Below, one piece after another: positions 8,451 through 51,700 of a DNA stretch of 64,000 nt. Made by a program: the position numbers and the translations under genes. The notes beneath the pieces are model-generated. The model had not been told where the DNA came from, did no database searches, and worked only from the letters and a program-made list of their open reading frames with translations. The stretch is from contig NC_043007.1 of the NCBI RefSeq assembly GCF_006345805.1, positions 60,698,001 through 60,762,000 of the forward strand, read 5' to 3'. The number at the start of each line of letters is the position of its first letter. Positions within the stretch are counted from its first letter, which is position 1. Origin of the DNA: Octopus sinensis (taxonomy: Eukaryota).

Positions 8451-9359
8451 CTACTGAGATTATGGTAATCTATAAAGAAGCATATATTTAATCACCAAAG
8501 GGTGCACACATGATAACAATTGTATAACATTTTAAAGAAATATAAGTTCTAACAATTATTTGTTTCCTATATATCACAATATTACAAAAACAATTAATGG
8601 TGTCTTAGCCAGTATGGTAAAATCCATTTACATAAGCAATGAATCCCTGTCATTGCAATCTTTAATCTTTGTCTGATTATAACTGCATCTCAGTTTCTAC
8701 TTAAAACTGCTATTTTACTGCTATTTATTCTTTTGTAGAATAAGGAAACAGCTTCAGGTTTTGCTTAAAAGGTACAATGCTTTGCTAATGGAAAGCTCTA
8801 GTTATAAAAGATAGTAGACACAGCACTCAATCCTTATCATTTCACCTCTTTTTTCCATGCTTGCATGGACTGGATCAGTCTTCTCTAGCAAGGTACCTTA
8901 CACCTTTGTGAAATTCAACATCTAAAGTTAGCTTTCAACATTTGTTCCTCTCTCAAGTTCTTTCTACTTGGTTTACTCAGCAATTCTGCAGCCATCCCTC
9001 ATGTGCATGTGTCTATATCAGTGCAGTTATCTCTCTTGCACACAACAGCCAATTCTTCTAGTAGAACATAACTTGTTTTTTCCCAGCCTTTGTATAAAAC
9101 ATCATACAATCTGCTATTCACTTCTAGAGAGGATTCTTTTGTTGCCAACAGAAAATAACAGCTCCCTCAACTTTTTTCACTATGCCATTATCCTAGTTCC
9201 TACACTGTCCCAACACTCAGCTCCTAACTATTAGGTCATTAAGGTAGCAGATGTTGTCAACCACTTCTAGCAAGTCTTCTAAGCATCTGAAAGAAAATCT
9301 ACCTCAATGACTTCTGTCTGAACCTGAAAATATGGAAAAAGTGTTTGTGTATGTGCATA

Positions 9360-12150
9360 AGACCCAAAATAACGTGGTGGTGGAACAATATTGTTGACTG
9401 GGCTATTAGACAAAAGAAACAGGCTTGGAAGGCTTGGAAGAACGAGGGTAGCAGGGAAGTGTATCAGACTGCCAGAAGGGAAGCTAGGAGACAGGTCTAT
9501 CTAGCCAGAGGGGAAGCAGATAAGAGAAAATTTGCCAATGTCCTGCGCCGTGAGGATGAAAGACTTGAGGCATTTCGTGTTGCAAGACAGTGTGTGAGAG
9601 AGAATCGTGATGTGGTAGGAGAGAAATGTGTTTGCAAGGATGACGGTTCACTTGCGCTAAATGAGGATGCAAAGAGAGAGGCTTGGAGACGCCACTATGA
9701 AAGGTTGCTGAATGAGGAAAATGAATGGGATAAAGAGAGTCTGCCGAATGTTGACCCAACAGAGGGACCAGCTATCCGAGTTGATAGTTCCGTGGTAGCT
9801 AAGGCAATTAGAAGCATGAAGACAGGGAAAGCCCCAGGCCCATCAGGAATTACTGCAGAGATGCTCAAAATATCTGGTAGTGTCGGCTATAGCATAGTCA
9901 CCCGTATAGTTAACCAGGTGATACACGAAGGAGTCATACCCAATGACTGGTGTAGCAGCATAATAGTCAACTGCTACAAAGGTAAAGGTGATGCCCTAGA
10001 TACAAATAACTACAGGGGCATCAAGCTGTTGGATCAGGTAATGAAGGTTACGGAGAGGGTTATAGCCCAATTAATTAGAGAGAGAGTAAGCTTAGATGAT
10101 ATTCAGTTTGGGTTCGTGCCAGGGAAAAGTACCACTGATGCTATATTCCTGGTAAGACAGCTGCAGGAGAAATACCTAGCCAAAGGTAAGCCCTTGTACC
10201 TGGCTTTTGTTGACTTGGAGAAAGCCTTTGACAGGGTCCCCCGATCCCTTATCTGGTGGTCAATGAGGAAACTAGGGATAGATGAATGGTTAGTGAGAGC
10301 TGTGCGTGCCATGTACAGAGACGCTGCTAGTAAGGTGAGGGTAGGCAACGAGTACAGTGAAGAATTCCGGGTAGAGGTTGGGGTCCACCAAGGTTCAGTC
10401 CTCAGCCCCCTCCTATTTATCATAGTCCTCCAGGCAATAATGGAAGAATTCAAGACAGGATGCCCCTGGGAGCTCCTCTATGCTGATGACCTTGCTCTAA
10501 TTGCTGAGTCACTATCAGAACTGGAGGAGAAGTTTCAGGTGTGGAAACAAGGATTAGAATCGAAGGGCCTTAGAATCAACCTAGCCAAAACCAAAGTCCT
10601 AATTAGTAGGAAGGTGGACCAACCACAAACGACTTCAGGTAGATGGCCCTGCTCGATCTGTAAAAAAGGTGTAGGTAGAAACTCTATAAGGTGCACCAAG
10701 TGTAAGCTATGGACACATAAGAGGTGCAGCAATGTCAAAGGTAGGCTAACTGGGAAGATAGTTTTCGTATGTGGCAGATGCTCAGGAGAAATAAACTCTG
10801 GAAACGTGCAGAGACCAACTTCTACCACGTTCCAGGGAGACAAACTAGAAGTAGTTGATAGCTTCCGCTACCTAGGAGACCAAGTCAGTAGTGGGTGTGG
10901 GTGTGCTGAAAGTGTAACGGCTAGAGTAAGAATAGCCTGGGCAAAGTTTAGAGAGCTCTTACCCCTGCTGGTGACAAAAGGCCTCTCGCTCAGAGTAAAA
11001 GGCAGACTGTATGATGCATGTGTACGTACAGCCATGCTACATGGTAGTGAAACATGGGCCGTGACTGCTGAGGATATGCGTAAGCTCGCAAGAAATGAAG
11101 CCAGTATGCTCCGATGGATGTGTAATGTCAGTATTCATAATCGTCAGAGTGTAAGTACCTTGAGAGAAAAGTTGAACCTAAGAAGCGTCAGTTGTGGTGT
11201 GCAAGAGAGACGGCTGCGCTGGTATGGTCATATGACGAGAATGGCTGAAGATAGTTGTGTGCAAAAGTGCTACACCCTAGCAGTTGAGGGAACCTGTGGA
11301 AGAGGTAGACCCAGGAAAACCTGGGACGAAGTGGTGAAGCACGACCTTCGAACTTTAGGTCTCACCAAGGAAATGACTAGAGACCGAGACCTATGGAAGT
11401 ATGCTGTGCGTGAGAAGACCCGGCAAGACTAGTCAGGCCATAACCCGTGGCCCCTACCTGGGACGTAGTAAGTCCACCTGTGCATACCTTCCTTCTTGTG
11501 ACACTTGTGAAGACCTGTTGAGGCAAGTGAAAATCAAATCAAATCAAATCAAAAAATTAAACAAAATCAAAATAGATGAACATCAATGGAATTTGTATCT
11601 TTGTGGTACCATCCAAACGTAGCCGTAGCCAGTGCCGCACCGACTGGCCTCCATGCTGTGGGCACGTAACAATCACCATCCGATCGTGGCCGATCGCCAG
11701 CCTCATCTGGCTCCTGTGTCGGTGGCACATAAAAAACACCATCCGAGCATGGTCGTCTGCTAGCCTTGTCTGGCACCTGGGTCGGTGGCACATAAAAACA
11801 CCATCCGAGCGTGGCCGTTCGCCAGCCTCGTCTGGCACCTGTGTCAGTGGCACATAAAAACACCATCCGACCGTGGCCGTTCGCCATCCTCGTCTGGCAC
11901 CTGTGTCGGTGGCACATAAAAAACACCATCTGAGCGTGGCCGTTCGCCAGCCTCGTCTGGCACCTGTGTCGGTGGCACATAAAATCACCCACTACACTCT
12001 CGGAGTGGTTGGTGTTAGGAAGGGCATCCAGCAGTAGAAACACTGCCAGATCTGACTGGCCTGGTGCAGCCTTCGGGCTCCCCAGACCCCAGTCGAACCG
12101 TCCAACCCATGCTAGCATGGAAAGCGGACGTTAAATGATGATGATGATGA
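9360..12150 (+). mobile_element. RTE-clade LINE, young 5'-truncated copy (RT ORF 9345-11432, no endonuclease) in SLC35E3 intron 3
   Basis: RT motifs DLEKAFDRVPR, GVHQGSVLSPLLF, LYADD; C-terminal RLRWYGH...GRGRPRKTW. 3'UTR ends ...aggaagggcatccagc...ggacgttaaa(tga)n. Confidence 0.95.
11670..11990 (+). repeat. ~62-bp tandem repeat in the RTE 3'UTR (5 units; 3 units in the copy at ~55362-55550)
   Basis: Unit caccatccgagcgtggccgttcgccagcctcgtctggcacctgtgtcggtggcacataaaaa(a). Confidence 0.92.
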
Positions 12151-20999: not shown

Positions 21000-22740
<1,741 letters not shown>

Positions 22741-34224: not shown

Positions 34225-35210
34225 AATGAAAATGGAAGAATATGAGATACATTTTCATCGTTTGATGCTCTTTTTTTCCAGAAAGGAGGAAAATGCTGTA
34301 CAAACAGCAAAAAAGATACAATTTATGGAGATAGTACCATAGCTGAGAGGACTGTAAGTCATCATGAGGTTAAGGAGTGAAAATTTTGAACTGGAAGACC
34401 ATGAACATCCTTGCATTAATGGCAACCAAACTGAAATGCTAATCAAAAATAATCCAGGTCACACGACAAGATGTTGCAGAGATACTTCACATATTTCTTA
34501 TGAGTGTCATAACGTATTTACAACTATTTGGGTACCCAAATTGCTGATATTTGGGTGCCTCATAATCTAATGGACTGCATTTCCATCTTGAATTCTCTGC
34601 TCAAACTCAACAAAAATTAGCCATTTTTGAATAGAACAATCGCATATGATGAAAAATGGATTATTTACAACAATGTACAGTAAACAAAGTTCATCAGAAA
34701 ACAAAATGAACCGCCTTTAATCACTCCAAAAGCTGGTAGTATCTGAAGTTGATGCTCAGTATCAGGAAGGATTGGAAGGGTATTGTGTATTACATGCTCG
34801 TGCAAATTCAGCGGTTGAATTCAGACAATTGTTGTTGCCAATCAGACCAATTAAAGGAGGCAATTGATGAAAAACATCCAGAATTGGTCAATCAGAAGGG
34901 TGTCATCTTCATTCAGGACAACACTAGATTTCATGTTTCCTTGCAGATCCAACAGAAATTGGTACAGCTTGGTTGGGATGCCCTACCACATCCACTGTAT
35001 TCACCCGATCTTGCAACTTCAGATTACCATTTATTTCAAACCTTACAAAATTCTCTTAATGGGAGAGACTTCGATTCTTTGGAAGTTCGTAAAAACCACT
35101 TAGAACAGTTCATGATCCAGAAAGATGCCAAGTTCTGAGAGAATGGGATCATGAGACTGCCTTAAATATGGCAAAAGGTAATGGAACAAAACGTGACATA
35201 TGTGGTTGAA
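34225..35210 (+). mobile_element. Mariner transposase relic (different subfamily)
   Basis: IHFHRLMLFF, YDEKWI.YNNV, QDNTRFH, HPLYSPDLATSDYHLFQTLQNSL. TIRs not confidently identified. Confidence 0.85.
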
Positions 35211-35678: not shown

Positions 35679-35776
35679 TCAAATTGCTGAACATGATTTA
35701 GGGTTGTGAACCTCACATTTACATTTGTCCTCATCTGGAACATCTTTCATCACACTTTCAACGTGCTTCCCACAAC
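35679..35776 (-). CDS. Cys/His-rich microprotein, exon 2 (G-CGKHVESVMKDVPDEDKCKCEVHNPKSCSAI*)
   Basis: Acceptor tattttacatttcag|GT TGT GGG, phase 1 matching exon 1, TGA at 35681-35679. The join completes the motif CxxCxKxTWxGCGxH...VP...CxC. Confidence 0.8.
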
Positions 35777-37419
35777 CTGAAATGTAAAATATATAGAACT
35801 TCAACCACCAATTTCTTTTGTTAAGTACAAGAGATTGATTTTAGGACAAGAGGCATGTAGCTGAATTAAATAAACTATGTTAATAACAATATCAATAACA
35901 CTTATTTTATCAACACTTGGGCTAAGAAATGAAAAGGGATGAAAGATAGGGTACCTCTACTTCTTTCTCATCTTCTCGGCTACCCCATACACATATGCAC
36001 CTTACTTTGTCCTATAGTTGATCCTGAAATCCCCCCCCTCACTCTATCTACCTATCTTCCTATTTCTTTTTTCTTCTTCTTTACTTTCACCAATTAATAG
36101 CTACCTCTGCTACCATTCTGTTATAGAACATTGATATATTCGCGTCTTTTGCTTGGGATGTCTACTATATCAGGACTTTAACCCACATGGATATATGCAG
36201 GATTGCACCAAAAGACTTACACTCATAGATCTACGTAGGATTGCACCTAAGGACTCATTCTCTGGTGTCTGTAACTTCAGAAAGTTGAACTATGAACTTT
36301 TATGCTTCTTTGTTCTTCTCGCTTTCCATCTCCTTATTCTTTTACACCCTTCCTCTATGTTGTCATCATATTGATATATACCATTTTCATTTTCCATATT
36401 TTTTACCCGCTATTTCTTTGTGATGATGGAATATCCCCCAAACAGCTATAAGACTTTGAATTTCTTGTTATAATAATAGTGTATATCACTCGAGATGTTT
36501 GCCTTGCCTTAATGTTTGTTGACCTGTTTAACAATTATATATCCACTGCATCGGAAATCTGCAATGTCTCCATAACTGCCATCTTGGCTATAAACTTGGA
36601 GCCCTAGTAATCCGTTACAGCACTTACCTAGCATACCTAATCACTGGGATCACCTGTGAACTAAACCGCCATACATTGTACACATATGTGTGTTTCTCCT
36701 CTGTCCCCCAAACAAATCTTTGCTTGTTTACAGTGCACCCACCCCAACACCAATACCGGATATCTCTATCTTCCCACCACCACAACCAATACTGGATATC
36801 TCTATCTTCCCACCATCTACACTGGATATCCCTTCTCCCACCACCATTACCTGTGTCTATTCTCCCACTCTCCTCCTCACTGGGCTGTTCTCCATATATT
36901 ACCTTCACTTCTCTCTCTCCTAGGACAAATGCAACCAGCCCAGCTGCTCATCCACCCACCCACTTCACTGACTATCTTACGTTTCATTCTGTCTAGAAAT
37001 TTGTCACCACCCCTTCCAGTTATCTCTTCTCCCAATTCCCCCCTCCTCACTGGTGCTGTTCCTTCTATTACCTGCACCTTCACTATCTCTCTACTGGGAC
37101 AAACGCAACCAAGTTATCTGCCCACCTACTTAACCAGCTATCGTTCATTCCATTTTCATTCTGTATAGAAACATGACAACAACTACCCAGGAATTTTCCT
37201 TGGCCTTACGAAGTGAAGGAGAAAGCTATTTGGCTGTCCTTGTGTGCTTGTTCCTGTGTGTGAGTGTGCTTGTGTATATATAGGAATGAGCTTTTCCTCT
37301 CTCTCTGTCTGAACCCTTCCTTGCTGGTGGTACCCTCCATTATACCTGCAATCCCCCTCTACCGGAACAAACACAACCAGTTTCAGCTGACCCCTTCCTA
37401 ACCTAACATTGGAATATCC

Positions 37420-40370
37420 ATATTTTTGCTACACCGCTTGAATCTACATCATTCGATGACCATAATGCTTATGCTTACAACGCTAACACCGGCTCCTACC
37501 TCCAGTAGGGGCAACAATCTTAACATGCTTGAATGTTGTCAGGTCGGAAGAGAGAACAGAAGAAGCATGCCTAAAAAACGAACACCGCAACAACCCTCTT
37601 CTTTTCAGACACTGAATAACATCCCTCCTCCCCAAACCTAACCCTACATTCCCTTCCCAGTTTTCAGACTTGGCACTGTCAATGTTGGCACACTGAAAGG
37701 TAGGTCTAGTGAGATTGCAGAAATACTTGAAAGGAGACGGGTTGATGTATGCTGCATACAAGAGGTAAGATGGAGAGGAGCTTCAGCTAGGGTCCTCACA
37801 GGCAAGGTACATAGGTATAAAGTCTTCTGGCAAGGCAACATGGATGGTGTAAGGGATGTAGGCATACTCCTCACAGAGAAATGGGTGGATAAGGTCATAG
37901 AGGTTGTTAGGGTATGCGATAGAGTGCTTAAGCTCAGGCTAGTCCTGCAGAACAGCACAGCTACAATTATCTCTGCCTACGCCCCACATGCAGGACCACA
38001 AAATGATCAGAAGGACCACTTTTATGATACCCTTCTACAGGCTACCTCAAAGACGAGTGGCAATGACCTCATCTTTGTGGTTGGAGACTTTAATGGGCAT
38101 GTTGGGCAGGAATCTGGTGTCTTCACTGGGGTACACGGTGGCCATGGTATTGGCACCTGAAACGATGAGGGAACCAGGCTACTGGAGTTTTGTGATGCGT
38201 GAAACCTTTTAATCTGCAACACTAACTTCAGGAAGCCAGACAGCCATCTTATAACCTATCAATCAGGGGACTCTGCTAGCCAAATTGATTTCATACTCAC
38301 CAGACAACAGGACGCAGGGTTACTCTTAAATACAAAGACCCTTCCGGGTGAAGAATGTACTCCCCAGCAAAGGCTGGTCGTTAGTGACTTTGGGCTCGAG
38401 ACCAGAAGGATACCAAGAAGCAGACCAATCCAAAAAAGAAGGATTTGGAACATAAAGAACCCTTCACATGGTCAAAGATTTAGGGATATCCTCATCAAAA
38501 AATTTGAGGAGAGGGAGGAGGAGCTACAAACATTGGACATAGAAGGTAGCTGGAAATTCCTACAGGACAGCTTGCTGAGTGCTACAGACTAAGTCTGCGG
38601 ATGGTGCAAAGTCCCTTCCAGACCTAGAGTTACATGGTGGTGGAATAGTATGGTAGACAGGACCATTAGAGCAAAGAAACAGGCCTGGAAAGCCCGGAAG
38701 AATGGGAGTTGTAGGAAACTGTATCAGGTAGCCAAAAAGGAGGCTGGGCAGAAGGTATACACAGCCAAGAGCGAGGTGGAAAAGAAGAAGCTTGCCAATG
38801 TCCAGCAACGTGAGGGCCAAAGAACTGAGGTATTTCGGATTGCAAGACTGTGTGAGAGAAAATTGTGATGTCACAGGAGAGAAATGTGCATGAATGATGG
38901 TGCACTTGATTTTAATGATTCTGAAAAGAAAGAGGCTTGGAGAAGCTATTTTGAAAGACTACTAAATGTGGAGAATGAATGGGAGGAGGAGAGGCTGCCA
39001 AGTGTTGACCCAGTAGAGGGACCAGCTATCCAAATAGACAGCTCCCAAGTAGATAAAGCAATTAAGGGGTATGAAGCCAGGAAAAGCCCCCGGCCCATCA
39101 GAAATCACTGCTGAGATGCTTAAAACATCTGGTGGTGTGGGCTATGGCCTAGTCACCCGCATTGTAAACCAGGTACTCATGATGGAGTCATACCCAACGA
39201 CTGGCGTAGCAGCACCATAGTCAACTGCTACAAGGGTAAAGGTGATGTGCTAGATAGAATTAACTACAGGGGTATCAAACTGCTGGATCGGGTGATGAAA
39301 GTCACAGAGAGGGTCATAGCCCATCTCATTAGGGAGAGTGTCTGCTTAGATGAAATGCATGTTGGTTTTGTGCCGGGTAGAAGCACCACTGATGCCATAT
39401 TCCTGGTTCAACAACTGCAGAAGAAATACCTAGCTAAAGATAAACCCCTATACTAAGCTTTTGTGAACTTGAAGAAAGCCTTTCACAGGGTCCCCCGATC
39501 TCTTATCTGGTGGGTGATGCGGAAACTGGAGATTGACGAATGGTTAACAAGGGCTGTAGAGGCCCTTTACAGAGAGGCCGTTAGTAAGGTTAGGATTGGC
39601 AATGAGTATAGTGAAGAATTCCGGGTAGAAATAGGGGTCCACCAAGGTTCAGCCCTCAGTCCTCTTTTATTCATCATAGTCCTCCAGACAATAACAGAGG
39701 AATTCAAGACAGGTTGCCCCTGGTAGCTCCTCAATGCTGATGACCTGGCCCTCATAGCAGAATCACTACCGGAACTAGAAAAGAAATTTTGGGTGTGGAA
39801 GCTAGGTTTAGAATCAAAAGGCCTTAGAGTCAATGTAGCAAAGACCAAAGTTCTAGTAAGTAGGAAGGTGAACTCATCACACACCCCTTAGGTAGGTGGC
39901 CCAGCTCAATATGTAGAAAAGGTGTAGGTAGAAACTCCATAAGATGTACCCAGTGTAAGCTATGGACACATAAGAAGTGCAGCAACATCAAAGAAAAATT
40001 AAGCGAGAAGATAGCATTCTTGTACGGCAGACGCACAGGGGTAATAGACACCACAGATACTCAGAAAACAGATTCCATCACACTCCAGGGGAAGAAACTA
40101 GAAGTAGTTGATAGCTTCCGCTACCTAGGTGACCAAGTTATTAGTTGGGGTGGATGCTCAGCGAGTGTTACCACTAGAATAAGAAATAGCCTGGACGAAG
40201 TTTAGAAAGCTTCTTCCTCTACTGGCAACAAAGGGTCTCTCGTTCTGAGTGAAAGGTAGATTGTACAACGCATGTGTGCGAACTGCCATGCTTCACAGTA
40301 GTGAAACATGGGCCATGACTGCGGAGGACACGCGTAGGCTTGAAAGAAATGGAGCTAGCATGATCCGCTG
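37420..40370 (+). mobile_element. Degenerate near-full-length RTE LINE (APE endonuclease + RT), 3' end missing
   Basis: FRLGTVNVGTLKGRS...DVCCIQEVRW, ISAYAP, GDFNGHVG, IDFIL endonuclease motifs, then RT with stops. Homology ends abruptly at about 40370. Confidence 0.92.
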
Positions 40371-40371
40371 G

Positions 40372-42478
40372 ATCAAACACTCGGTCACCAAGGGTGTCCA
40401 CTCTCATTGCTTTTGTATGTTTTGGCTCTTGAGCTGTTACTGCAAAAGGTTGAGTGACATCCCAAGAGTGCCAGGATGTTGAAAGTCGGTTTCAGCTTAT
40501 GCAGATGACGAAAATGGAACACTTACAGGAGGTAGGCAAGGCCATTGAGGTTTATGAGACGGTGGCAGGAGCAAAGATTAACCTGGAAAAATTGGTCGGC
40601 TTGCAACTTGGTACCTGGAGGGGCAAGTCGATGCCTTCAGACAGCGTCGTAGGACTTTGACAGAGGGCCCGGTTAAGTTGCTAGGGTTCTGGTTTGGTCA
40701 AGACCTCCATGTAGAGAAGAACTGGGCTGAAGTTACGAGCAGAGTGGCTCACATAGTCAGAACCTGGTCTTGACAGTGGCTGTCCCTGAAAGGGCGGGCA
40801 GAGGTGGCCAATGTGTTCCTCGCATCGGTTGTAATGACCAATGTGATGAACACATTGGCCTACCGTCTAACCATTATTATTTGCTGGATTCATGGTTGAT
40901 CAAGTTGGAAAGACAGCTCTTTCATTTTTGTGTGGAAGGGCTCAAAGCCAGTTGTAAAACGCTCTATTTGCTGTCAAAGACTGTTAAAGGGAAGACTAGG
41001 GATGCCTTGGCTGTTGATGCGCAAACACACACTGAGGTTGAGACATCTATGGATTCTTCTGGATGGTGAACGGGTGTGGTCTCTGCTGGTGAAACAAACG
41101 TATCCCTCATTTGCTAGTTTTGGTGGATGGGAAGCCTGGTGCTTTCGTAGATCTAGGTTGAGTGAATGGCATACGGAGTGTCACATAGCCCTCCTGCTAT
41201 TCCATTGCTCAGATAATGCCAGTGGTGACAGTACTACAGTAGAGACTCAGAGTCTCAGGCATATTCAACTTGACAGCCTGTTTTTTCGTACGTTTGGGTT
41301 GTGGACACTGGATAACTTCCAAAAGTCCTTGACCTGGCAATGTTACAGAGGTTTGGGATAAGCTTCCAAGACACAGTCAATGTGATACGCCAACTTGCGC
41401 AAGATGTGAGCGGGATAGAGAAACCGTCCTGCACGCTTTTGTTCAGTGTCCAGAGGTATCGGAGATGTGGACTTATGCGGAACATCTGTTGTCTGGTACA
41501 GGAAGAATACAGCTATCGACTGAGTCAATTATAAAAATTGACCCGCCTAATTTTCTGTCAAATGAAGGTAAGAATTGCTTTCTCACTGTAGTACCAATAG
41601 CGAAAGAGATGGTATGGAAGACAAAAATGAAAGGAAGGTGTTCCTTCGATTTAACTTGACAAAACCAAAACAAACATTTGACTGTTTCCATGACAACTCG
41701 ACAATTCACTTCAAATAATTTCGTGACAGTTGCTGAAATAGAAGGAGAAGAAAGCTGATGGGTTGTGTGTGCATGCTTGTTCTTGTCTGTGTGTGCGTGT
41801 GTGCTTGTTCTTGTCTGTGTGTGTGTGTGCTTGGTCTTGTCTGTGTGAGCGTGCGTGCTTGTTCTTGTCTGTGTGTGCGTGCGTGCTTGTTCTTGTCTGT
41901 GTGAGCGTGCGTGCTTGTTCTTGTCTGTGTGTGCGTGTTCTTGTCTGTGTGTAGACAAGAATAAGCATGCACACACACACAGACAAGAAAAAGCACGCAC
42001 ACACAACCCATTAGCTTTCTTCTCCTCCTCCCATTTTAGCAGCTGTCACGGAGGTCTGTGGAGTTGTCACAGAAACAGTAGAATGTTTGTTTTGGTTTTG
42101 TCAAGGAATGCCGAAAGGAGTAATGACAGGCAGCTTCATCTCTGGCCTTGCCTTACAAAGATAGAGAAGAGGTGTCTGTTGGAGAAAGTGTTTAACGAAA
42201 GCTGGAAATATGTAGCATGAGTGTTGCGAGTGGTTGTAACTGTGTGAATATACCATAAAGTGTCTTAAAGGTATCAGTGGTGAATTGGGGCTCGTGGGGT
42301 CAGAGCTGAACCCAAACACCACTCCATCTGTGTTGTCTGTTGTGTTGTCATCATTTTTTGTATGTATTATATATAAATTTTTAACTGCATTTTCTTGTAA
42401 AATTCATTTTGTTGTATCTGACCCCTCAGATTGTACTATCCCCATCTATGTTGGCCCCTAGTGGATAATAAAGAATCA
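40372..42478 (+). mobile_element. Tx1/L1-clade LINE relic (ORF2 RT 3' part + 3'UTR)
   Basis: QGCPLSLLLYVLALE, SAYADD, GAKINLEK, SLKGRAEVAN, GRLGMPWL...LRLRHLW and a C-terminal zf-RVT-like region. 3'UTR ends near aataaa. Confidence 0.85.
41637..42112. mobile_element. Non-autonomous foldback/MITE with long imperfect TIRs, internal minisatellite and 8-bp TSD
   Basis: TSD gaaaggaa (41629-41636) / gaaaggag (42113-42120). Arms ttgacaaaaccaaaacaaacatt... and ...aatgtttgttttggttttgtcaa. The second Tx1 copy shows the empty site gaaaggaa. Confidence 0.8.
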
Positions 42479-42479
42479 A

Positions 42480-45140
42480 GTATGATGGCAGCCATTTTTC
42501 TAGTTTAGTCATTTCTGACCACAGTGTAATGGAGGAGAATTGTGTTTTTGAGACTTGCTGTTGTTATTACAATTATCATTACTGTTGAAGTGACTTATGT
42601 GTATTTGTTATTTGCTGTTTTTCTCCCTATTGTGGGTGAGAAAAGGCTTAGCTTTTCCTATCATGGAAAGCTATGCAAGGACTGCTGCACTGTTGGAAGC
42701 AAGGCAGATGGAGGTTGATATGGAGGAGGTTTTGAGAGGTGAACAACTTATGTAGAGGGTAGGAGACACTATCAAGCTGGTCCCTCCACAGAAAACAGTG
42801 AAGGATGGGAGCGATGGGACGGTAGTGTACCGCACACAAGCAGTCGCCACCAGCAGGATGGAGAGGTTGTTGGAGGACGATGTTGAGGAGTGTCTGGGAG
42901 ACGTAATGAGGAAAGCTACTTTTATTGGCAGAGGAGGAGGATACGGCACGGTGGAGGTGAGATTTGTCACCAAAGAGGAGGCAGCCTCACATTTCACCTC
43001 AATTCTGTGGTCAAGCAGGGTAGCACTGTTGCCCATGTACGGGAGAGAGTGCAGAGTTCGAGTCAGAGTGGCGAGAGTGCTGCCTGAAATCAAGACAGAG
43101 TGGTTGGTAGTGGCTGTTCTGGCTGCCACTGAGGAGAGTTCAGAACTGGGACCAATGGGAGAGACAAATACATTAAACTGGTGGGGATTCAGTGTAGAGA
43201 TATGGATTTTTGCCATGTTTGGGGACATAGGATGAGTCCCCTACCAGATTGAGATAGCAGAGGAAGGTGTGTTGAAGGTTGTTGTAGAGGGACGACAACC
43301 CAATTGTTGTATATGTGGAGTGAGGGGTCATGTGAAGACACAGTGCTCCAGGTTTGAGCATGCTCGAAGGTAGGAGAAGGGGAGCAGGAAAAGGAGATGG
43401 GAGAGCTGAAACAGGGAAGGACAGGAGCAATATTGAGTGTGGCAGTGATGCAAGGGAGAAGAAAGGAATTGAGGTAAGAGGTCGAGGAGGGGAGTGATGG
43501 GTTTGTTGGCCCCAAAAGAGGAAGGAAGGCTAGAACAGGGACCAGCAACAGAAGCCAAGAGGAGGCCACAAAGGGTTGAGGAACAACCTAAACTTGAAAG
43601 TACGCAAGCAGCAGGAAGAGGAACAACAAAGAAAGAGGAATGTAATTGAAAGGGATTCTGATGGTCTGCAAAAGGAGTGTGGAGGTGGAGAAAAGAATGG
43701 CAGAGTGGAAGGGACTGGTGAGAGTGAAGCTGCTGAGAGAGGAGTTTGACAGAGATGATAGAGGAGTTCTTGTGCGGGACAGTGGGGTTTGATGGATTTG
43801 TGGATGCATTCGGTGGATTGGTAAGTGTGATGGACAGGATATGGTTGCATGACACTCCACCGTCTGTAGTGAAATATGAACAGTATAAGGAAAAAAAAAG
43901 AGGAAAGACTGTCAAAAAATCATGTATAAATGCAAACATTCGACTCAAAGGGAATCATATAAGATTTATTGTTGGGCAAGTTGGAGAGACAGATCTTCCA
44001 CTTCTTGTGGAAAGGCTCGACTCCACTTGTGAGACATTCTATCTGCTGTCAAACACCATTGAAGTGTGGACTAGGGATACCTTGGCTGTTGATGCGCAAA
44101 CATGTGCTGAGGTTGAGGCATCTTTGGCTCCTCCTGGATGGTGAATGGGTGTGGTCTTCACTGACGAAACGGATGTTTCCCAGGTTCACTAGTTTTGGTG
44201 GACAAGAAAACTGGTTCCATCGAAGATCGAAATAGGGTACATTGTACACGGAGTGTCGTAAGGCTCTCCTGCTTTTCTGTCACTCGGGCAATGCCAGTGG
44301 TTTTGGTACAACCACATAATTTTATAGCAGGTTGGTAGAGTCTTGATGTGATGATGCCCTAGGGGAGACCCTGGGTCTCGATAATAATCAACTGGACAGT
44401 CTGTTCCAATGGATGTTTGGGCTGAAGACATTGGATAACTTCCAAAAGTCTCTGGCCTGGCAATGTTACTGAGGGGCCTTACCCATTTGGGATAAGCTTA
44501 CTAGACACGGTCATCCCAGCCCATCGGCCTGTCCAAGATGTGAGCAGGATAGGGAAACCATCCTGCACACTATTGTTCAATGTCCGGAAGTGTCAGAAGT
44601 GTGGGCTTATACAGAACACCTGTTGTCTGACACAAGAAGAGTACAGCTGTCGTCTGAGTCAATTATAAAATTTAACCCACCTGATTTTCTAACAAAAAAA
44701 GGTAAGAATTGTTTTCCCATGGTAGTAGCAATCACAAGAGAGGTGATATGGAAGTTGAGAATGAAAGGAATGGCAACAGGCAATTTCATCTCTGGTCTGG
44801 GGCTAGTGAGTTTTTTCACTTCTCACCTGAAAAGGAAATGCCTGTCAGAGAAAATGTTCAAAGATAGATGGAAGCATGTAGCATGAGTGCTGAGTGTGAA
44901 AGATACCTCATGAACATGCCATAGACCTTATCACAAGTATCAGTGGTGGGACAGGGCTCGTGGGGTTGGAGCATAATCCCATTTCATGACCTCATTTGTT
45001 TTGTCTTTTGTTCGTCTATCATTTGTTTTACATATTTTTATGTAAAGGAAACTTTTTGCTGGTGGAGCAATACAATTTTTGCTCTTATGACAGGACTGAA
45101 GCTACGTTGTTTTCCCATTATTAATCAATTGTATAATAAC
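42480..45140 (+). mobile_element. Second Tx1/L1-clade relic with ORF1 (CCHC knuckle) and internally deleted ORF2
   Basis: ORF1 from ATG 42663 with C-x2-C-x4-H-x4-C (CCICGVRGHVKTQC, 43305-43346). Jumps at about 43960 into the ORF2 C-terminus, paralogous to 40900-42220. Confidence 0.82.
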
Positions 45141-45223
45141 ATTAAATTATAACACTATATAGTGCAGTTAGGCTAGTTGTGTGATCACCCATTTTGGCAA
45201 AAAAATTTGCATACATATTACAT

Positions 45224-45446
45224 GGTCTTAAATTAATTTTGCCGGTAAATTTGAAACATTTATATTAATTTAGCATTAGAATTCTTCAAGTCGTATAAAA
45301 ATAGTTATTGTCTGCATCATTCAAAAGAGAAATACATTCTGCATAAGGTGTAAAAGATAAAAATAATTTGTATGGTGTTAGTAACAAAATATTTTGTAAG
45401 AAATAGAACTTTTATCATCGGTCTTAAATTTATTTTCGCCAGTGTA
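45224..45446. mobile_element. Solo right arm of an IR/DR-type Tc1 element
   Basis: Terminus ggtcttaaatttattttcgccagtg|TA and an inner direct repeat ggtcttaaattaattttgccggta about 200 bp upstream. Confidence 0.55.
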
Positions 45447-45792
45447 TATTTACACACACACACACCAGCATACCTGTGTCATGAAATATGCAGAGTTTTA
45501 TTAATGATAGAATATGAGATAAACCATTAATAATTGTCAGCAATCTAGTAAGTATATGTACATACAAAGAATTGAATCACTTGAACAATCAGATACGATT
45601 ATAATGTGTGAATATACACACACACGCACATCTGTACATATACATATATATGTACATATAAATACACACGTATATATATATACACCTATATACATATATA
45701 TACACACACACAGATGCCACCACAAAGTATATTAACATACATTTATATACACATATAAATGCACAGACATATCTCTCTCTCTCTTGCATACA

Positions 45793-45827
<35 letters not shown>

Positions 45828-46059
45828 TTATACTCATATTCATATATACCTATGGATATGCATAGATATACATGTGTGTATGCATGTGTGAGTATATGAA
45901 TTATGCATGCATGTATGTTTGTTTACATTTTTTAGAAATCAGTAAAACATGTTATCCTTTACACTTGGAAAAGGAAATAGGGCCTTGTATCAGAAATGGT
46001 AAAAATTGGAAAATGGACTAAAGAAAAAAGAGAAAAATGAAAGTACATATCTATATCTA

Positions 46060-46094
<35 letters not shown>

Positions 46095-47960
46095 ATGCAT
46101 GCATGCATTTTCTTGTTCTGTAAAAATTTCTTTCAAAATATTTCTGAAAACTTTAAACATGCTGCATGTTCTGCTTATCATGTATTAGGTATGCCAATCA
46201 CGATGTGAGGTCTATTAGTGATAATGAAAACTTGCCTGATTCTAAATTTAAGGCAATTTCTTTTTAAAAAACAAATACTACTCCTTTTCATTATTCACAT
46301 TGTCAATATCACAATATGTAACAAAATGCAAACTTATACTTTATTTACAGGAAAGAGTTCAATTATCCAAAAGAAACATTGCATTAAGAATCATAACAAC
46401 AGTAATATCAATGATGAGGTTTTAAATAATAATCCTACTTAAGAGCAGCTAAAAAAATTGATTTCTAAGGAAAAGGATGTGAGATTATGTGCTATGCTTT
46501 TCTCAAGACAAACTGTTGACAAACAAAGTCAAATCAGTTAACAACTGTAAAAAATCAAACAATTTAGTTGGTAAAATATATTGATAGTGCTTTCTCCATT
46601 AAAACCTGTGTGTGAGCCTCAATGTGGTTGTTCAACCTGATAAAATAGCAACCAAATCTCCTCCACATTATACCCTGCTCTCTTAAATGAAGGACCCATT
46701 ATATAATGTAGTCATCTTAGATGCACTATGCTTGATATATGCACGGAGAGTCATGGCTGATGCCTTTCATCAGAACTCTGCTTGATCAAAGCAAATAACA
46801 AAACAATAAAAATGGTGTCAAGTATTTGTTAATACTAAATATTTTGATACACCAAAAGATTTCACACAACTATTAAAAACACTTATTTCTCGGAAAAAAA
46901 ACAACAACCATCACCTACCCTATTTGAAACTAACAAAACATATTTAGAAAAATGAATGTTATTTGGGTTGAGTATTTGCAAAATTTAAACACTATAGTAC
47001 AGCTGAAAGGGTGTAACCTATTAATATTACAAAAATAAATTCAATAAAGTTAATATAAAAACAATTTTCTTTTTTTAACTCTGAAAATGGAATATTACTT
47101 TATCTCTGACTGAAGAACAACCACGATTGTTTAGCTTTTGGTTGGCCAGTATTGAACAGATATATGATTCTAACTATAACTATCCTACCTTTTCACAGAC
47201 AATGCATATTGGTGGATGGTAGAATTCTGATGATGACAGGGATACAGTTGTTTGACGAGCTAAGTGGATGAACATTCCACAGACATGGATATCTTTAAAG
47301 TAATTCTCAGGCAAAATCAGTGTGACATAGGCTTCTACAGTTTCCAGCTACTTATATTTACTCACAGATTATAAGTTGACCTGCAGTTAGAAAATGACAT
47401 TTGCCCAAAATACCATATAGTGGAATCAAACCTGAAAACTTGTGGTTCTAAAGCAAACCATTCAGATATACTACTTCTACAGACAGTGTATATAGAGCTC
47501 TACATCATCCAATGCATCCTTTCTTTAAGACAGAGGTTATGATTTGAGAAAGGTTTCAATGTTTTTTCTAGCAAGATGAGCAACCACAAAGAGGCTCCTT
47601 CAACTATTGTAGCTACATTACACATCAATGGATCACAAAACAAGAATTTGTTCTTTTACTTACAGCATATTTTGTGTTATTTCTGAAGCAATGGGAAATA
47701 ATATTTATTTGTTTAATGTATTAGAAAATTATTATAGATCAACCTTGTTACCCTTCGAATGATATATTTAACCGATCTACAACAACTTTCTTTAACAAGA
47801 AACTAATAAATTAATTATTTCTTATGTTTTCTGGAGGTAGAATGTTACTTTCATTTGTTCAAGTATCCATGTCTTAATCCATTTCCTGTACAAGACTCAA
47901 CAAGTGATTAATTAAAATAAATTTGTAATTTGCACAAGTATGAGGTTTTAAATGTCATCA

Positions 47961-49454
47961 TTATGGTATCCAGGTGATAACTTCTGTGATCTTTGACTGT
48001 CTATGATTTTGAGCGGCTATGGATTCGCATAAGTCTTCAACAGCATAAAAACTGTCAAAATTTTCACAATTGTTCTCTTCTAAGAATCTTCTCACCGTTG
48101 ACAGAGCAAGTCCAACATCTGTTGTAGAGACAGGTAGCATCACATCTTTATCATCTTCATCATTGCTGTTGTTACTATCTGTTGATTTTGCATCATCATT
48201 CATGAATGAGGCAACCAGTTCTTCATATGTTGGGATACTGTAACACTCCAGATCATCATCTTGGGCTACATACTCTTCAAACTGCTCTTTTGTCAACATA
48301 GTAGGAGGGACTACCACATCTTCTTCAGCAGGTGGAGTGTCAACACATGTAAAACCAGCTTTCTGGAAACAACTGATTATTGTAGAAGTCTTCAAATTGT
48401 TCCATGATTTTGCAATTAAATGAAAAGCATCCAATAATGTGATTTTCTTGGCATTTGCTTTAATCTCTGGATGACCATTAATGTCAAGAATAAGATTTCT
48501 GACCAAGGCACTTCTATATAGTGATTTCAAAGCTTTTATAATGCCTTGGTTGCATGGTTGTTTTACTTTTATTATTTTTGATGGAAAAAACATCAGTTTG
48601 ACTTGTTTGAGATTTGTAATTGCTGGGTGGGCAGTACAACTATCAACAAGTAATACAATTTTTCTTTTCTTTCGAGTCAGCTCTCTGTCAAATTCTCTCA
48701 GCCATGTAGTAAATATCTCTACAGTCATCAAAGCGTTTTTACTGTGTTTGTAGGTCACCGGAAGTGTTTTCCCATTGAGGCTTCTGGGGTCTTTATTTTT
48801 GCCAATCACTAATAATTTTCTTTTGTCATTTCCTGACATATTGGATGCCCCCATAATTGTAACTCTATCTTTGTAATTTTTGGTTCTGCTCTTTGTCTCT
48901 GTCTTGGAGGTAAGCGTAACATCTGGAAGGGCTCTGTAGAACAATCCAGTTTCACCTGCAATGTAGATGTCATCGGGATTATAAGTCTGTAGAATCTCAG
49001 GTAATACTGTACGTGTCCAGTTATCAACTGCATCTTTCTTCTCACAATTAAGCTTTTTGAATCTGATGTTATGTCTTACTTTCCATCGAGATAACCATCC
49101 ACTTGTAGGATTGAACTCTGCTCTGTTTAGATGCTCTGCTAAATCTTTGGCCTTTTCCGACAGAATAGGTCCTGATAAAGGAATGCCTCTGGACTTGGCA
49201 TTGTTGAACCATTGAGATAATGCCCCCTCTACATCAGCATCTTTTCCAGATCTTTGCCTTTTTCTCTTTGGATTGGCATTAGATCGATAGTTTGCTATAA
49301 TTTCTTCTTTCTTTGCGGTCAGTCTGGATATCTGGGATTGTGAACATCCCAGTTTCTTTGCCACTTCTGTTTGGGACATCTTCTGCCCCAGTAGAATAAC
49401 TGCTTCATACTGGTCAGCGATTGACAGATCGTTTCTTTTCCTCTTGGTTGTCAT
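47961..49454 (-). CDS. pogo/Tigger-derived TIGD-like protein (psq HTH + CENP-B HTH + DDE_1-like domain), probably domesticated
   Basis: Uninterrupted 497-codon ORF from ATG. HTH region (VAKKLGCSQSQISR), CENP-B-type ALSQWF...GIPLSGPILSEKA...GWLSRWKVRHNI. Triad positions read IAGETG (D->G), LVDSC (D), QPCNQG (D->N), with 30-residue spacing between the last two. Confidence 0.85.
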   Translation of the reverse strand: MTTKRKRNDLSIADQYEAVILLGQKMSQTEVAKKLGCSQSQISRLTAKKEEIIANYRSNANPKRKRQRSGKDADVEGALSQWFNNAKSRGIPLSGPILSEKAKDLAEHLNRAEFNPTSGWLSRWKVRHNIRFKKLNCEKKDAVDNWTRTVLPEILQTYNPDDIYIAGETGLFYRALPDVTLTSKTETKSRTKNYKDRVTIMGASNMSGNDKRKLLVIGKNKDPRSLNGKTLPVTYKHSKNALMTVEIFTTWLREFDRELTRKKRKIVLLVDSCTAHPAITNLKQVKLMFFPSKIIKVKQPCNQGIIKALKSLYRSALVRNLILDINGHPEIKANAKKITLLDAFHLIAKSWNNLKTSTIISCFQKAGFTCVDTPPAEEDVVVPPTMLTKEQFEEYVAQDDDLECYSIPTYEELVASFMNDDAKSTDSNNSNDEDDKDVMLPVSTTDVGLALSTVRRFLEENNCENFDSFYAVEDLCESIAAQNHRQSKITEVITWIP

Positions 49455-49739
49455 TTTTTTTTGTTTTTGTCTTCTCTAAACCACTCAATTGAATAAATAT
49501 AATTTGAATATCGATTTATAAGAGCCAGAAGGTGACAGCTTACTCCAAGCTTGGTATGATCAAGTCCATTACTTATGTACATCTAATTTATCTTCCACCC
49601 GGTAGAAGCTATTTCATTATCAATACATATCATCTGTTGGCATGAAGATCATTTGAATTATCAACTGAGGTTTTGCCATATCCCATTCATATTTTCCAGT
49701 TACCCAGACTTAACAAGATCCATAGGCCCATCCATAAGC

Positions 49740-51700
49740 CCCAACATCGACTTTCATATACTTTGAAATAACGATAACTTGGGTTACGCGAATTAAGAAA
49801 ATTCAGTTGCCTCAATCGCCGGTTCACGAAATAGATAATGAAAATAACAAAAAACGTCCATTCACCGCTTTGATTCAAAACTACTGCTTTACAAATTTTA
49901 TCTACAACAAAGATTTTTTGAAGAAATTGACTACGCAGCGGGACCAGAAACAAAATATAAAAGGAATCGAACTTCAACAGTCTTTAAATGTTTTGATATT
50001 GCAAGATTAACTTCGATTTACTTCCTGGTTTGACTATTGTCAGTTTAATTCATCATAAAACAAGCTTCCACAGTCATTTTATGCATAGAAAATCAAATAA
50101 ATGGTTATTTTTATGCTACATTTTGTTTTGTGTTACTTAAAATTCGAATAAATCTTATACAATTAATCGGAATTAATTCCGATGAAATGGCCCTACGTTT
50201 CTTTTAACGACTCGAATTTCAAACACAAAAATGTACTTGCACTTTTGATTAATCGTGCTTCGATGAGGTTCAGAATAATACAAAAATAATAATGCCTAAG
50301 CTAGATAAACTAATTTTTTTTCTTAATGTCTGCATTACAAAAAAAAAATAAAAAAGCTATAACATCCTATATGGAGAAATTACATTCTGACAGAAAGTTT
50401 TGTATTTGGAAATAAATTATAGAAACTTTCTCTCACCAATCCACGTTGTCTTTCCACAGGTATCACAAGTCGCTTTCTTACACATTATGAAAATTTTCGT
50501 GTTTTGTTTCTTCCAAGGTCCCGAATATTATATTTATAAGTGTCAAAAGTCTCAACTTTCCCCCAGCAACTCAAAAGCCTCCGAAATCTACAGGAACAGA
50601 TTTGAAACCGCAGTGGACATATTTTTCTACGTTAAAAGAAATAGTTTCACCTATTGGCCTCCTTATAAAGGAATGTTTCGTAATTATGTTAAGAAAATTA
50701 ATTGCTTTTCATTAATTTCTATACAAATTATAAATACTGTTTCATTTACTTTTGTAAATTTTCGAAGTAATTAAACACCATAAGAAAAAAATTGTAATAC
50801 ATTAAAAATAGTTTCAGTTATTGTTCTCCTTGCAACTGAATGCTTCATAATTATATTATGGAAATTTTCTTTTCATAAATTTATGGATAAATTATAAATA
50901 TTATTTCGTTTATTTCTGTAAATTAAACACCTTGGGCAAAAAATAAACAAAATTAATTTATTATGTTTGCAAGCAGTATAACGAACTGTGTATAAGGATT
51001 ATGGCGTAGTAATACGTAATCTCAGCCAGAAGGATAGGGTGGAGATCCTTCCGTCTTAATCAATATGACTATAATATATAAGAATGCTTATTAAATAGCT
51101 TCAACTAAAATAATAACAGTGAATAACAATTTCTCATAATAGCACAACTTCAGAGTGTATTATGAATAAAGCTTATAGATTTTGTAAATACAGCATTTCC
51201 TTTCTAGGCAACTACCGATTCCTATTCTTTTTTTTTTTTTCGCGGCAGAACGAACTTCTTTCAGTTTATAAATTTTATTATAGTTATAGATGTGGTCAAA
51301 TTGAAACGTAATATACATGTTATCTCTTTTCTCGTTAAATATTTATACGGCATTCGTAAATGCACCATAACTTCTGTTCGTTTGGATTGTAGATTGGCAG
51401 AATCGTTAGAGCATAGGTGAAAATGTGTTGCGATATTTCTTTCGACTTTTTACTCTTGGAATTCGTTTCTCGCTGAGGTCATCTTTGACTTTAATCTGTA
51501 GCAAGATGCGAACTTGCGTTGCCATACATCCTTTCGGGGTCGATAAAATGAAAGAACAGTCAAGAATTAACCCCCTCCCTTCATAACTGCGAGTCTTGTG
51601 TCTAAATTCGAAACCCTTATGTATAAGTGCAATGAGAAGGAACAGGAAAACGGGAAAGGTAGGTATGTTGGGGGAACCCCCTCCAACAATTGAAGAAAAA
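49740..51700. promoter_or_regulatory. CpG-retaining promoter-like region for the microprotein/TIGD unit
   Basis: Local CG enrichment judged by eye, the TATAAAT motif, and a perfect palindrome atcggaattaattccgat at about 50166-50183. Confidence 0.45.
50437..50485 (-). CDS. Cys/His-rich microprotein, exon 1 (MCKKATCDTCGKTTWI-G)
   Basis: ATG at 50485-50483, 49 nt, donor ATT G|gtgaga (phase 1). TATAAAT on the minus strand at 50538-50532, inside a CpG-retaining region. Confidence 0.8.

Follow-up and report, generated by a model that had tools for sequence, protein, structure and literature searches.

A predicted two-exon octopus gene, split by a 14.7-kb intron, for a Cys/His-rich microprotein of a large undescribed family

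Two short coding pieces that lie 14.7 kb apart on the minus strand of a 64,000-nt stretch of the Octopus sinensis genome (NCBI RefSeq assembly GCF_006345805.1, contig NC_043007.1, positions 60,698,001 to 60,762,000; hereafter the window) very probably form a genuine, intact two-exon gene, predicted to encode a 48-residue Cys/His-rich microprotein. We are confident that the locus is a real one that was inherited in octopus, and the gene is an apparently unannotated member of a protein family that is catalogued but undescribed. The pieces had been paired in a sequence-only reading of the window, which joined 50485-50437 to 35776-35679 through phase-matched GT/AG sites, linked the resulting motif to small uncharacterised proteins of fungi, plants and actinobacteria, and held that two halves were unlikely to complete such a motif by chance.

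The sequence gives the peptide as it had been written down. Coding exon 1 (50485..50437, minus strand, 49 nt) runs from ATG to ATTG and is directly followed by GTGAGA; read on the minus strand with a slash at the donor, this is ...cataATGTGTAAGAAAGCGACTTGTGATACCTGTGGAAAGACAACGTGGATTG/GTGAGAgaaag. Coding exon 2 (35776..35679, minus strand, 98 nt including the TGA stop codon) is directly preceded by ttttacatttcag, and the acceptor region reads ...tatatattttacatttcag/GTTGTGGGAAGCAC...TCAGCAATTTGA. The intron between them (35777..50436, 14,660 nt) begins with GT, ends with AG and interrupts the codon of Gly17 in phase 1 (G/GT). The predicted spliced junction is ...ACGTGGATTG/GTTGTGGGAAG (likewise GACAACGTGGATTG/GTTGTGGGAAGCACG), and joining 49 nt to 98 nt gives a 147-nt open reading frame (ORF) encoding MCKKATCDTCGKTTWIGCGKHVESVMKDVPDEDKCKCEVHNPKSCSAI*. 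Translation exactly reproduced the 48 residues, seven Cys and two His first proposed. The peptide ends in ...KSCSAI, with CSAI as a CaaX-like last four residues.

A family hidden Markov model (HMM) was built from 42 members, with the octopus row excluded, and used to screen the 3758 fragments that lie between stop codons in the six reading frames of the window. Only two fragments matched significantly. The one with exon 2 aligns to profile positions 16-44 at E = 9.9e-13 and the one with exon 1 to positions 1-17 at E = 2.3e-6; the fragment ranked third had an E-value of 0.31. The two matches cover complementary halves of the profile, on the same strand and in the correct order. Each exon occurs once within the window by tBLASTn, and the spliced peptide scored 76 bits (E = 3e-22) against the octopus-free HMM. 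Because these two matches are collinear and complementary, and nothing else in the window falls below 0.3, a chance origin of the split motif, which the sequence-only reading had called unlikely, is excluded. The idea that the two pieces were brought together by chance or by an assembly artefact has a single point in its favour, the shortness of the exons, and we regard its probability as negligible given these E-values and given canonical, phase-matched splice sites that fall on a conserved spiralian intron.

The motif does mark a protein family. Searching 1.84 billion representative proteins by phmmer with the octopus peptide returned 773 clusters (50% identity) at E <= 1e-3, many of them aligned from residue 1, and a profile search of a 5.8-billion-sequence collection returned 4214 proteins (clusters at 90% identity). 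In an alignment of 43 members, C2, C7, C10, G17, C18, G19 and H21 are invariant and M1, K12, C35 and C37 near-invariant, which gives the core MC-x4-C-x2-C-x-K-x2-W-x-G-C-G-x-H ... VP ... C-x-C. The octopus peptide carries all 11 of these residues and has the form typical of the family: it starts with MC and, at 48 residues, is shorter than about 80. No Pfam domain was found in the 120 family members listed of the 4214, and the octopus peptide itself gave no Pfam match at E <= 10 and nothing meaningful in NCBIfam. In the PDB, neither the peptide nor the family profile picked up a relative by sequence beyond a chance-level match to cerato-platanin (PDB 3sul; E = 0.49 with the single sequence and 0.13 with the profile, over 25 residues), which was rejected, the Cys ligands not being conserved. 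Literature searches by motif, by homologue accession or locus name, and for small Cys-rich proteins in cst operons found no paper on the family. It is a very large family without a Pfam model, a solved structure or a description.

Named carriers are bacteria, fungi and animals. Among bacteria they include Actinomycetota (Leifsonia, Pseudoclavibacter, Actinomyces, Arthrobacter and others), Myxococcota/'Deltaproteobacteria' and Acidobacteriota; among fungi, Agaricomycetes, Pucciniomycotina, Fusarium, Mortierellomycota, Zoopagomycota, Mucor and Gigaspora; and among animals, Helobdella robusta, Taenia solium, Schistosoma japonicum, Adineta vaga, A. ricciae and Magallana gigas. The fungal and actinobacterial carriers that the sequence-only reading proposed were thus borne out, while plants, which it also proposed, are absent from the named matches. 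Animal members were found only in Spiralia, a distribution drawn from named matches, with many Logan/ENA matches carrying no taxon and tiny split genes being easily missed. All named homologues from bacteria, fungi and animals are annotated as hypothetical or uncharacterised, in keeping with the earlier view of a protein poorly described in animals. A word-indexed search of the 5.8-billion-sequence collection found no octopus protein of this kind, and the collection thus lacks a counterpart of the gene.

We recovered the exon structures of homologues by an exhaustive search of annotated gene ranges. The gene of the leech Helobdella has exons of 49 and 182 nt around a 466-nt intron (...TGGAAAG/GTTACT...GGGCAG/GTTGTGGCA), that of the tapeworm Taenia has exons of 49 and 80 nt around a 99-nt intron, and that of A. 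vaga (P0151, one of two rotifer genes examined) has exons of 49 and 122 nt around a 56-nt intron. As in octopus, the intron follows nt 49 in phase 1, inside Gly17 (G/GT TGY GG), in all three, and the proposed octopus junction is shared by four spiralian phyla. The identical intron in leech, tapeworm and A. vaga therefore validates the octopus splice. Genes from five fungi were compared, and none has an intron at the animal site. The Linnemannia gene is interrupted in phase 0 behind codons 13 and 20 and in phase 1 inside codon 25; the introns of Gigaspora, Rhodotorula and Fusarium lie at positions other than the animal site, and Amylostereum has a phase-0 intron displaced from it by 1 nt.

Because first-exon length and intron position and phase are identical across Spiralia, the gene structure argues for vertical inheritance of the octopus gene within this group and not for recent fungal transfer; of patchy retention and horizontal transfer, both of which had been left open, it is vertical descent that the shared intron position favours. 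Some observations do point to a fungal gene having recently entered the cephalopod lineage: the top single-sequence matches are basidiomycete proteins (72-75% identity), the Amylostereum intron lies just 1 nt from the octopus site, and the octopus C-terminal 'CEVHNP' is similar to the Rhodotorula-type 'CEPHNP'. Over the 37-residue core, however, the octopus sequence is as close to Schistosoma as to Agaricomycetes (73% identity in both cases), and a neighbour-joining tree of this core was unresolved and did not place the octopus sequence by sequence alone. The exact exon length and intron phase are those of the leech, tapeworm and rotifer genes and recur in no fungal gene of the five, and octopus LINE (long interspersed nuclear element) copies fill the intron and recur elsewhere in the window. 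We consider such a transfer very unlikely. The octopus protein is the cephalopod orthologue of the leech, flatworm, rotifer and oyster hypothetical proteins.

The homologues differ among themselves in other respects. The Adineta ricciae copies (P0051 and P0294; L003/L004 2001-2342) have no intron and carry long acidic Thr/Glu/Lys-rich tails; many unnamed Logan/ENA sequences resemble them, and the family seems expanded in rotifer-like organisms. The Helobdella robusta protein (P0107; L102 3001-3697) ends in a tail of 38 residues rich in His, Gly and Cys, GEHGCGGHGQEHGCHGEKGHATGGHCGGSKGHCGQKK, which looks like an extra segment for metal binding. In the Magallana gigas entry K1QLD1 (P0074, 134 aa), the domain is followed by ~90 unrelated residues, which looks like a mis-joined or read-through model. 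In Amylostereum chailletii (L001 1501-1782), both introns are phase 0 and each lies exactly 1 nt from a phase-1 intron of other members, one from the Gly17 intron of the animals and the other from the Val25 intron of Gigaspora and Linnemannia; the offsets could have arisen by sliding of an intron or by separate gains at proto-splice sites.

The octopus intron owes its size to LINE copies, a Tigger element and tandem repeats that lie in it. The gene model on record at the locus is the 497-aa transposase ORF of the Tigger/pogo element, which shares its strand with the microprotein gene. This ORF occurs residue for residue on chromosome CM016869.1 of GCA_006345805.1 (60,743,961-60,749,454), an assembly that a genome paper assigns to Octopus sinensis (10.1101/2023.05.16.540928). 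One alternative is that the two exons are decaying remnants of a spiralian gene, no longer transcribed or correctly spliced since the intron grew to 14.7 kb. The missing counterpart in the collection searched fits such a relic, as does an intron that exceeds those of the other animals compared 30- to 260-fold in length, and the intact same-strand transposase ORF could trap splicing or polyadenylation. Against this, the ORF is complete and has lost none of its 11 invariant or near-invariant residues, both splice sites and the phase are preserved, the ATG has a good context and a TATA-like box upstream of it, and 73% identity to a blood-fluke protein over the 37-residue core would be hard to keep without selection. 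We therefore hold a relic to be improbable, and retain the reading of an intact gene. Its features are collected in Table 1 together with the elements inside the intron.

Table 1. Features of the predicted microprotein gene and of its intron, in window positions.
Feature	Position	Strand	Basis or remark
TATA-like box TATAAATA, candidate core promoter	50531..50538	-	read from sequence; 53 nt 5' of ATG
Coding exon 1, MCKKATCDTCGKTTWI + first base of Gly17; A at -3 of ATG	50437..50485	-	sequence + family HMM
Splice donor GTGAGA	50431..50436	-	sequence
Intron, 14,660 nt, phase 1 in Gly17	35777..50436	-	sequence; same position and phase in Helobdella, Taenia, A. vaga
Tigger/pogo transposase ORF, intact, 497 aa, inside intron, not part of gene	47961..49454	-	Pfam DDE_1, HTH_Tnp_Tc5, CENP-B_N
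Second intronic LINE 3' fragment	43963..44883	+	Pfam zf-RVT; similar to 40887-41226
Degenerate intronic LINE, endonuclease/reverse transcriptase/PHD-like segments in different frames	37642..41656	+	Pfam Exo_endo_phos, RVT_1, PHD
Pyrimidine-rich tract + acceptor attttacatttcAG	35777..35790	-	sequence
Coding exon 2, remainder of Gly17 + CGKHVESVMKDVPDEDKCKCEVHNPKSCSAI + stop TGA (35681-35679)	35679..35776	-	sequence + family HMM
Candidate poly(A) signal ATTAAA	35589..35594	-	read from sequence; 85 nt past stop

Seven Cys/His positions are conserved across kingdoms, and because of these ligands the protein probably binds metal, as the sequence-only reading had supposed. Many actinobacterial members have Gly-His instead of C37 ('RCxGHE'), a ligand-type exchange of the sort typical of metal ligands. 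AlphaFold2 modelled the octopus peptide with a mean pLDDT (predicted local distance difference test) of 78.9, placing C7-x2-C10 at the turn of a beta-hairpin (3-6/13-16) and starting a helix from about residue 22, just past C18-G-x-H21; a bacterial member showed the same pattern of hairpin and helix. From the conserved ligands and this predicted secondary-structure pattern alone we infer that the metal may be zinc. The C7-x2-C10 hairpin turn and G-C18-G-x-H21 at the helix start would form one zinc-type, treble-clef-style site, and a second site, of three thiolates, would be built from C2, C35 and C37.

The genomic context of bacterial members points towards thiol and sulfur chemistry. We counted neighbours by family within 3 kb at 80 bacterial loci from different species, after screening neighbouring ORFs with a codon-position GC filter that removes spurious high-GC ORFs. 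At least one thiol- or sulfur-stress gene was present at 47 of the 80 loci. Thioredoxin was a neighbour at 19 loci (directly upstream on the same strand at 13) and an ECF sigma factor with a zf-HC2 domain at 17 (14 upstream, same strand). A Pyr_redox_2 reductase fused to rhodanese (CoA-disulfide-reductase-rhodanese) occurred at 13, lying downstream on the same strand at 7, with 3 more overlapping the approximate gene end. CsoR-family, CstR-like regulators were found at 12 loci, stand-alone rhodanese at 13, and MBL+rhodanese and OsmC proteins at 5 each. Two layouts recurred, ECF-sigma > thioredoxin > gene and CsoR-family > gene > reductase-rhodanese. In Pseudoclavibacter the order is thioredoxin, reductase-rhodanese, CsoR-family regulator, gene and cation-efflux (CDF) gene, and in a metagenomic lineage rhodanese, thioredoxin, a YgaP-like protein and a TPMT-like methyltransferase adjoin the family gene. 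The CsoR-family neighbours have two Cys and no His four residues ahead of the second Cys, which we take to be the pattern of persulfide-sensing CstR and not the copper-sensing signature. As these operons suggest, the domain would work in thiol, persulfide or metal homeostasis.

Many members also carry C-terminal segments that may attach them to membranes. A tail of the form ...[GS][WFL][FL]x[RK][LI][FL]G[RK], such as GGFFSKLFG or GFLARLFGK, ends 110 of the 409 members fetched (bacterial examples are P0016, P0160, P0168, P0221 and ~100 more), and a further 25 of the 409 have Cys at position -4 (CQII, CKII, CEII, CTIM, CIIS and others), as does the octopus protein with CSAI. Most of the Cys(-4) members come from one group of short ENA contigs that are taken to be eukaryotic. 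The CaaX-like subgroup comprises P0076, P0280-P0293, P0318, P0323, P0331, P0336, P0343 and P0113, with L104 from Linnemannia; in Mortierellomycota models, CIIS or CIVQ is not terminal but has further residues behind it, a sign that the annotated last exon may overrun the true C-terminus. Membrane anchoring would use a MinD-like amphipathic tail in bacteria. The octopus product would be a 48-residue cytosolic microprotein, which a CaaX-type lipid anchor (CSAI) would hold at the membrane, as it would some other eukaryotic proteins.

Taken together, we tentatively propose, with less than even confidence, a membrane-tethered small metal/thiol domain that acts in thiol, persulfide or metal homeostasis. 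It is a more speculative proposal, and rather unlikely as a whole, that the family is an ancient component of thiol, sulfane-sulfur or metal homeostasis, a two-site Cys6His microdomain that is anchored to the membrane, placed in bacteria under regulators of persulfide and disulfide stress (CstR-like, ECF sigma with zf-HC2) and kept among animals only in Spiralia; under that proposal the spiralian genes would have been largely missed by annotation because they are tiny and split.

Several observations weigh against parts of this reading. A Foldseek search of the AlphaFold2 model against the PDB gave no significant match (best, a CW domain with E = 4.2 and TM 0.36), and the grouping of the ligands into two sites is drawn from secondary structure only. 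AlphaFold2 did not render the C-terminal tail of a bacterial member as a helix. In the octopus CSAI, a1 is Ser and a2 is Ala, which is weakly aliphatic and a poor a2 for a classical CaaX motif, and none of the other animal homologues has a CaaX ending. The association seen in bacterial operons need not carry over to animals. At the gene itself, the closest poly(A) signal is the variant ATTAAA and not AATAAA.

The main alternative to a thiol or persulfide function keeps the same gene and gives it another role, as a buffer or chaperone of Cu, Zn or Ni in the manner of metallothioneins or as an Fe-S protein, in place of one linked to redox or persulfide chemistry. Seven Cys/His ligands in the domain, the His/Gly/Cys-rich tail of the leech homologue and the Pseudoclavibacter gene lying between a CsoR-family regulator and a CDF gene would all suit it. 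Yet only 15% of the residues are Cys, a Trp is conserved and regular secondary structure is predicted, unlike in metallothioneins; the CsoR-family neighbours lack the copper-signature His and, judged by the family pattern, look CstR-type; and the commonest neighbours are thioredoxin and rhodanese-fused reductases. Such a role is conceivable but doubtful.

These results show how a conserved coding gene can escape notice in a chromosome-level cephalopod genome when 14.7 kb separates coding exons of 49 and 98 nt and the sole gene model recorded inside the locus is a transposase. The restriction of named animal matches to Spiralia and the exact intron make a clean case for lineage-specific retention of an ancient microprotein. 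The family is itself of more interest than the octopus gene, being huge and uncharacterised with conserved ligands, coherent operons and apparent membrane-anchoring tails: for its more than 4000 clusters no Pfam model, structure or paper was found, yet it has seven near-invariant ligands and a clear bacterial operon context. If the membrane anchor and the persulfide links are true, it would add a new player to the biology of sulfide and thiols, from bacteria through to marine invertebrates.

The surrounding DNA is rich in transposable elements, with the Tigger/pogo element, several LINE copies and a mariner fragment in the window. No terminal inverted repeats were found near the intronic Tigger element. 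The LINE family has an intact 695-aa ORF (RVT_1 and a PHD-like finger) at 9345-11432 (+), to which the degenerate intronic LINE at 37642..41656 is 79% identical. Besides the intact one, the window has at least three copies with 79-95% identity, at 13.9-14.8, 38.6-40.4 and 54.3-55.7 kb, the one at 54.3-55.6 kb being 94% identical to the intact copy. The mariner-type transposase fragment (34749-35138, +; weak Transposase_1/DDE_3 matches) lies ~540 nt past the microprotein stop, and the first canonical AATAAA on the strand of the microprotein gene sits within it. Tandem repeats in the intron, at 41764-41937 (28 bp, 6.3 copies, 90% matches) and 36738-36851 (36 bp), give rise on either strand to long but spurious ORFs rich in His/Thr or in Cys. 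A 170-aa ORF at 21411-21923 (-) has a weak triose-phosphate-transporter/EamA match (E = 1.4e-4) and may be an exon of a nucleotide-sugar-transporter-like gene that lies downstream on the same strand.

Among known systems, treble-clef and zinc-knuckle fingers share an arrangement with the AlphaFold2 model of the octopus protein, which has a CxxC at a beta-hairpin turn and a second ligand pair (C18 and H21) at the start of a helix. However, the octopus protein has no significant Foldseek or sequence match to solved zinc fingers, and a simple treble clef has nothing equivalent to its C2, C35 and C37. Metallothioneins are likewise small, Cys-rich and linked to metals, but the octopus protein differs from them in its low Cys fraction (7 of 48 residues), its Trp, a fixed ligand spacing with Gly-Cys-Gly-x-His and the predicted hairpin and helix, and it has no Pfam metallothionein match at E <= 10. 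The membrane-targeting sequence of E. coli MinD is KGFLKRLFGG (PMC5471200), and the tails of bacterial family members (GFFxRLFGR type) are closely similar to this short hydrophobic-basic motif; the likeness is confined to the bacterial tail and does not extend to the domain, and the octopus protein has CSAI in its place.

Within the family, fungal and bacterial members (Stereum, Rhodotorula, Fusarium and Linnemannia; Leifsonia WP_085370118.1, Pseudoclavibacter caeni and Actinomyces slackii) have the same seven ligands as the octopus protein in 38-80 aa and no Pfam domain. Unlike it, the Agaricomycete proteins have an N-terminal extension, hence their first Cys is not at position 2, and the bacterial proteins usually add the GFFxRLFGR-type tail and a thiol/persulfide operon setting. 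The spiralian homologues (Helobdella robusta XP_009031894.1/HELRODRAFT_194728, Taenia solium TsM_000515800, Schistosoma japonicum, Adineta vaga UJR10629.1 and Magallana gigas K1QLD1) have the family core in common with octopus at 54-73% identity over 37 residues. Octopus departs from them in its tail, EVHNPKSCSAI (CaaX-like) in place of 'CPR...', and in the length of its intron, 14.66 kb against 56-466 nt in Helobdella, Taenia and A. vaga.

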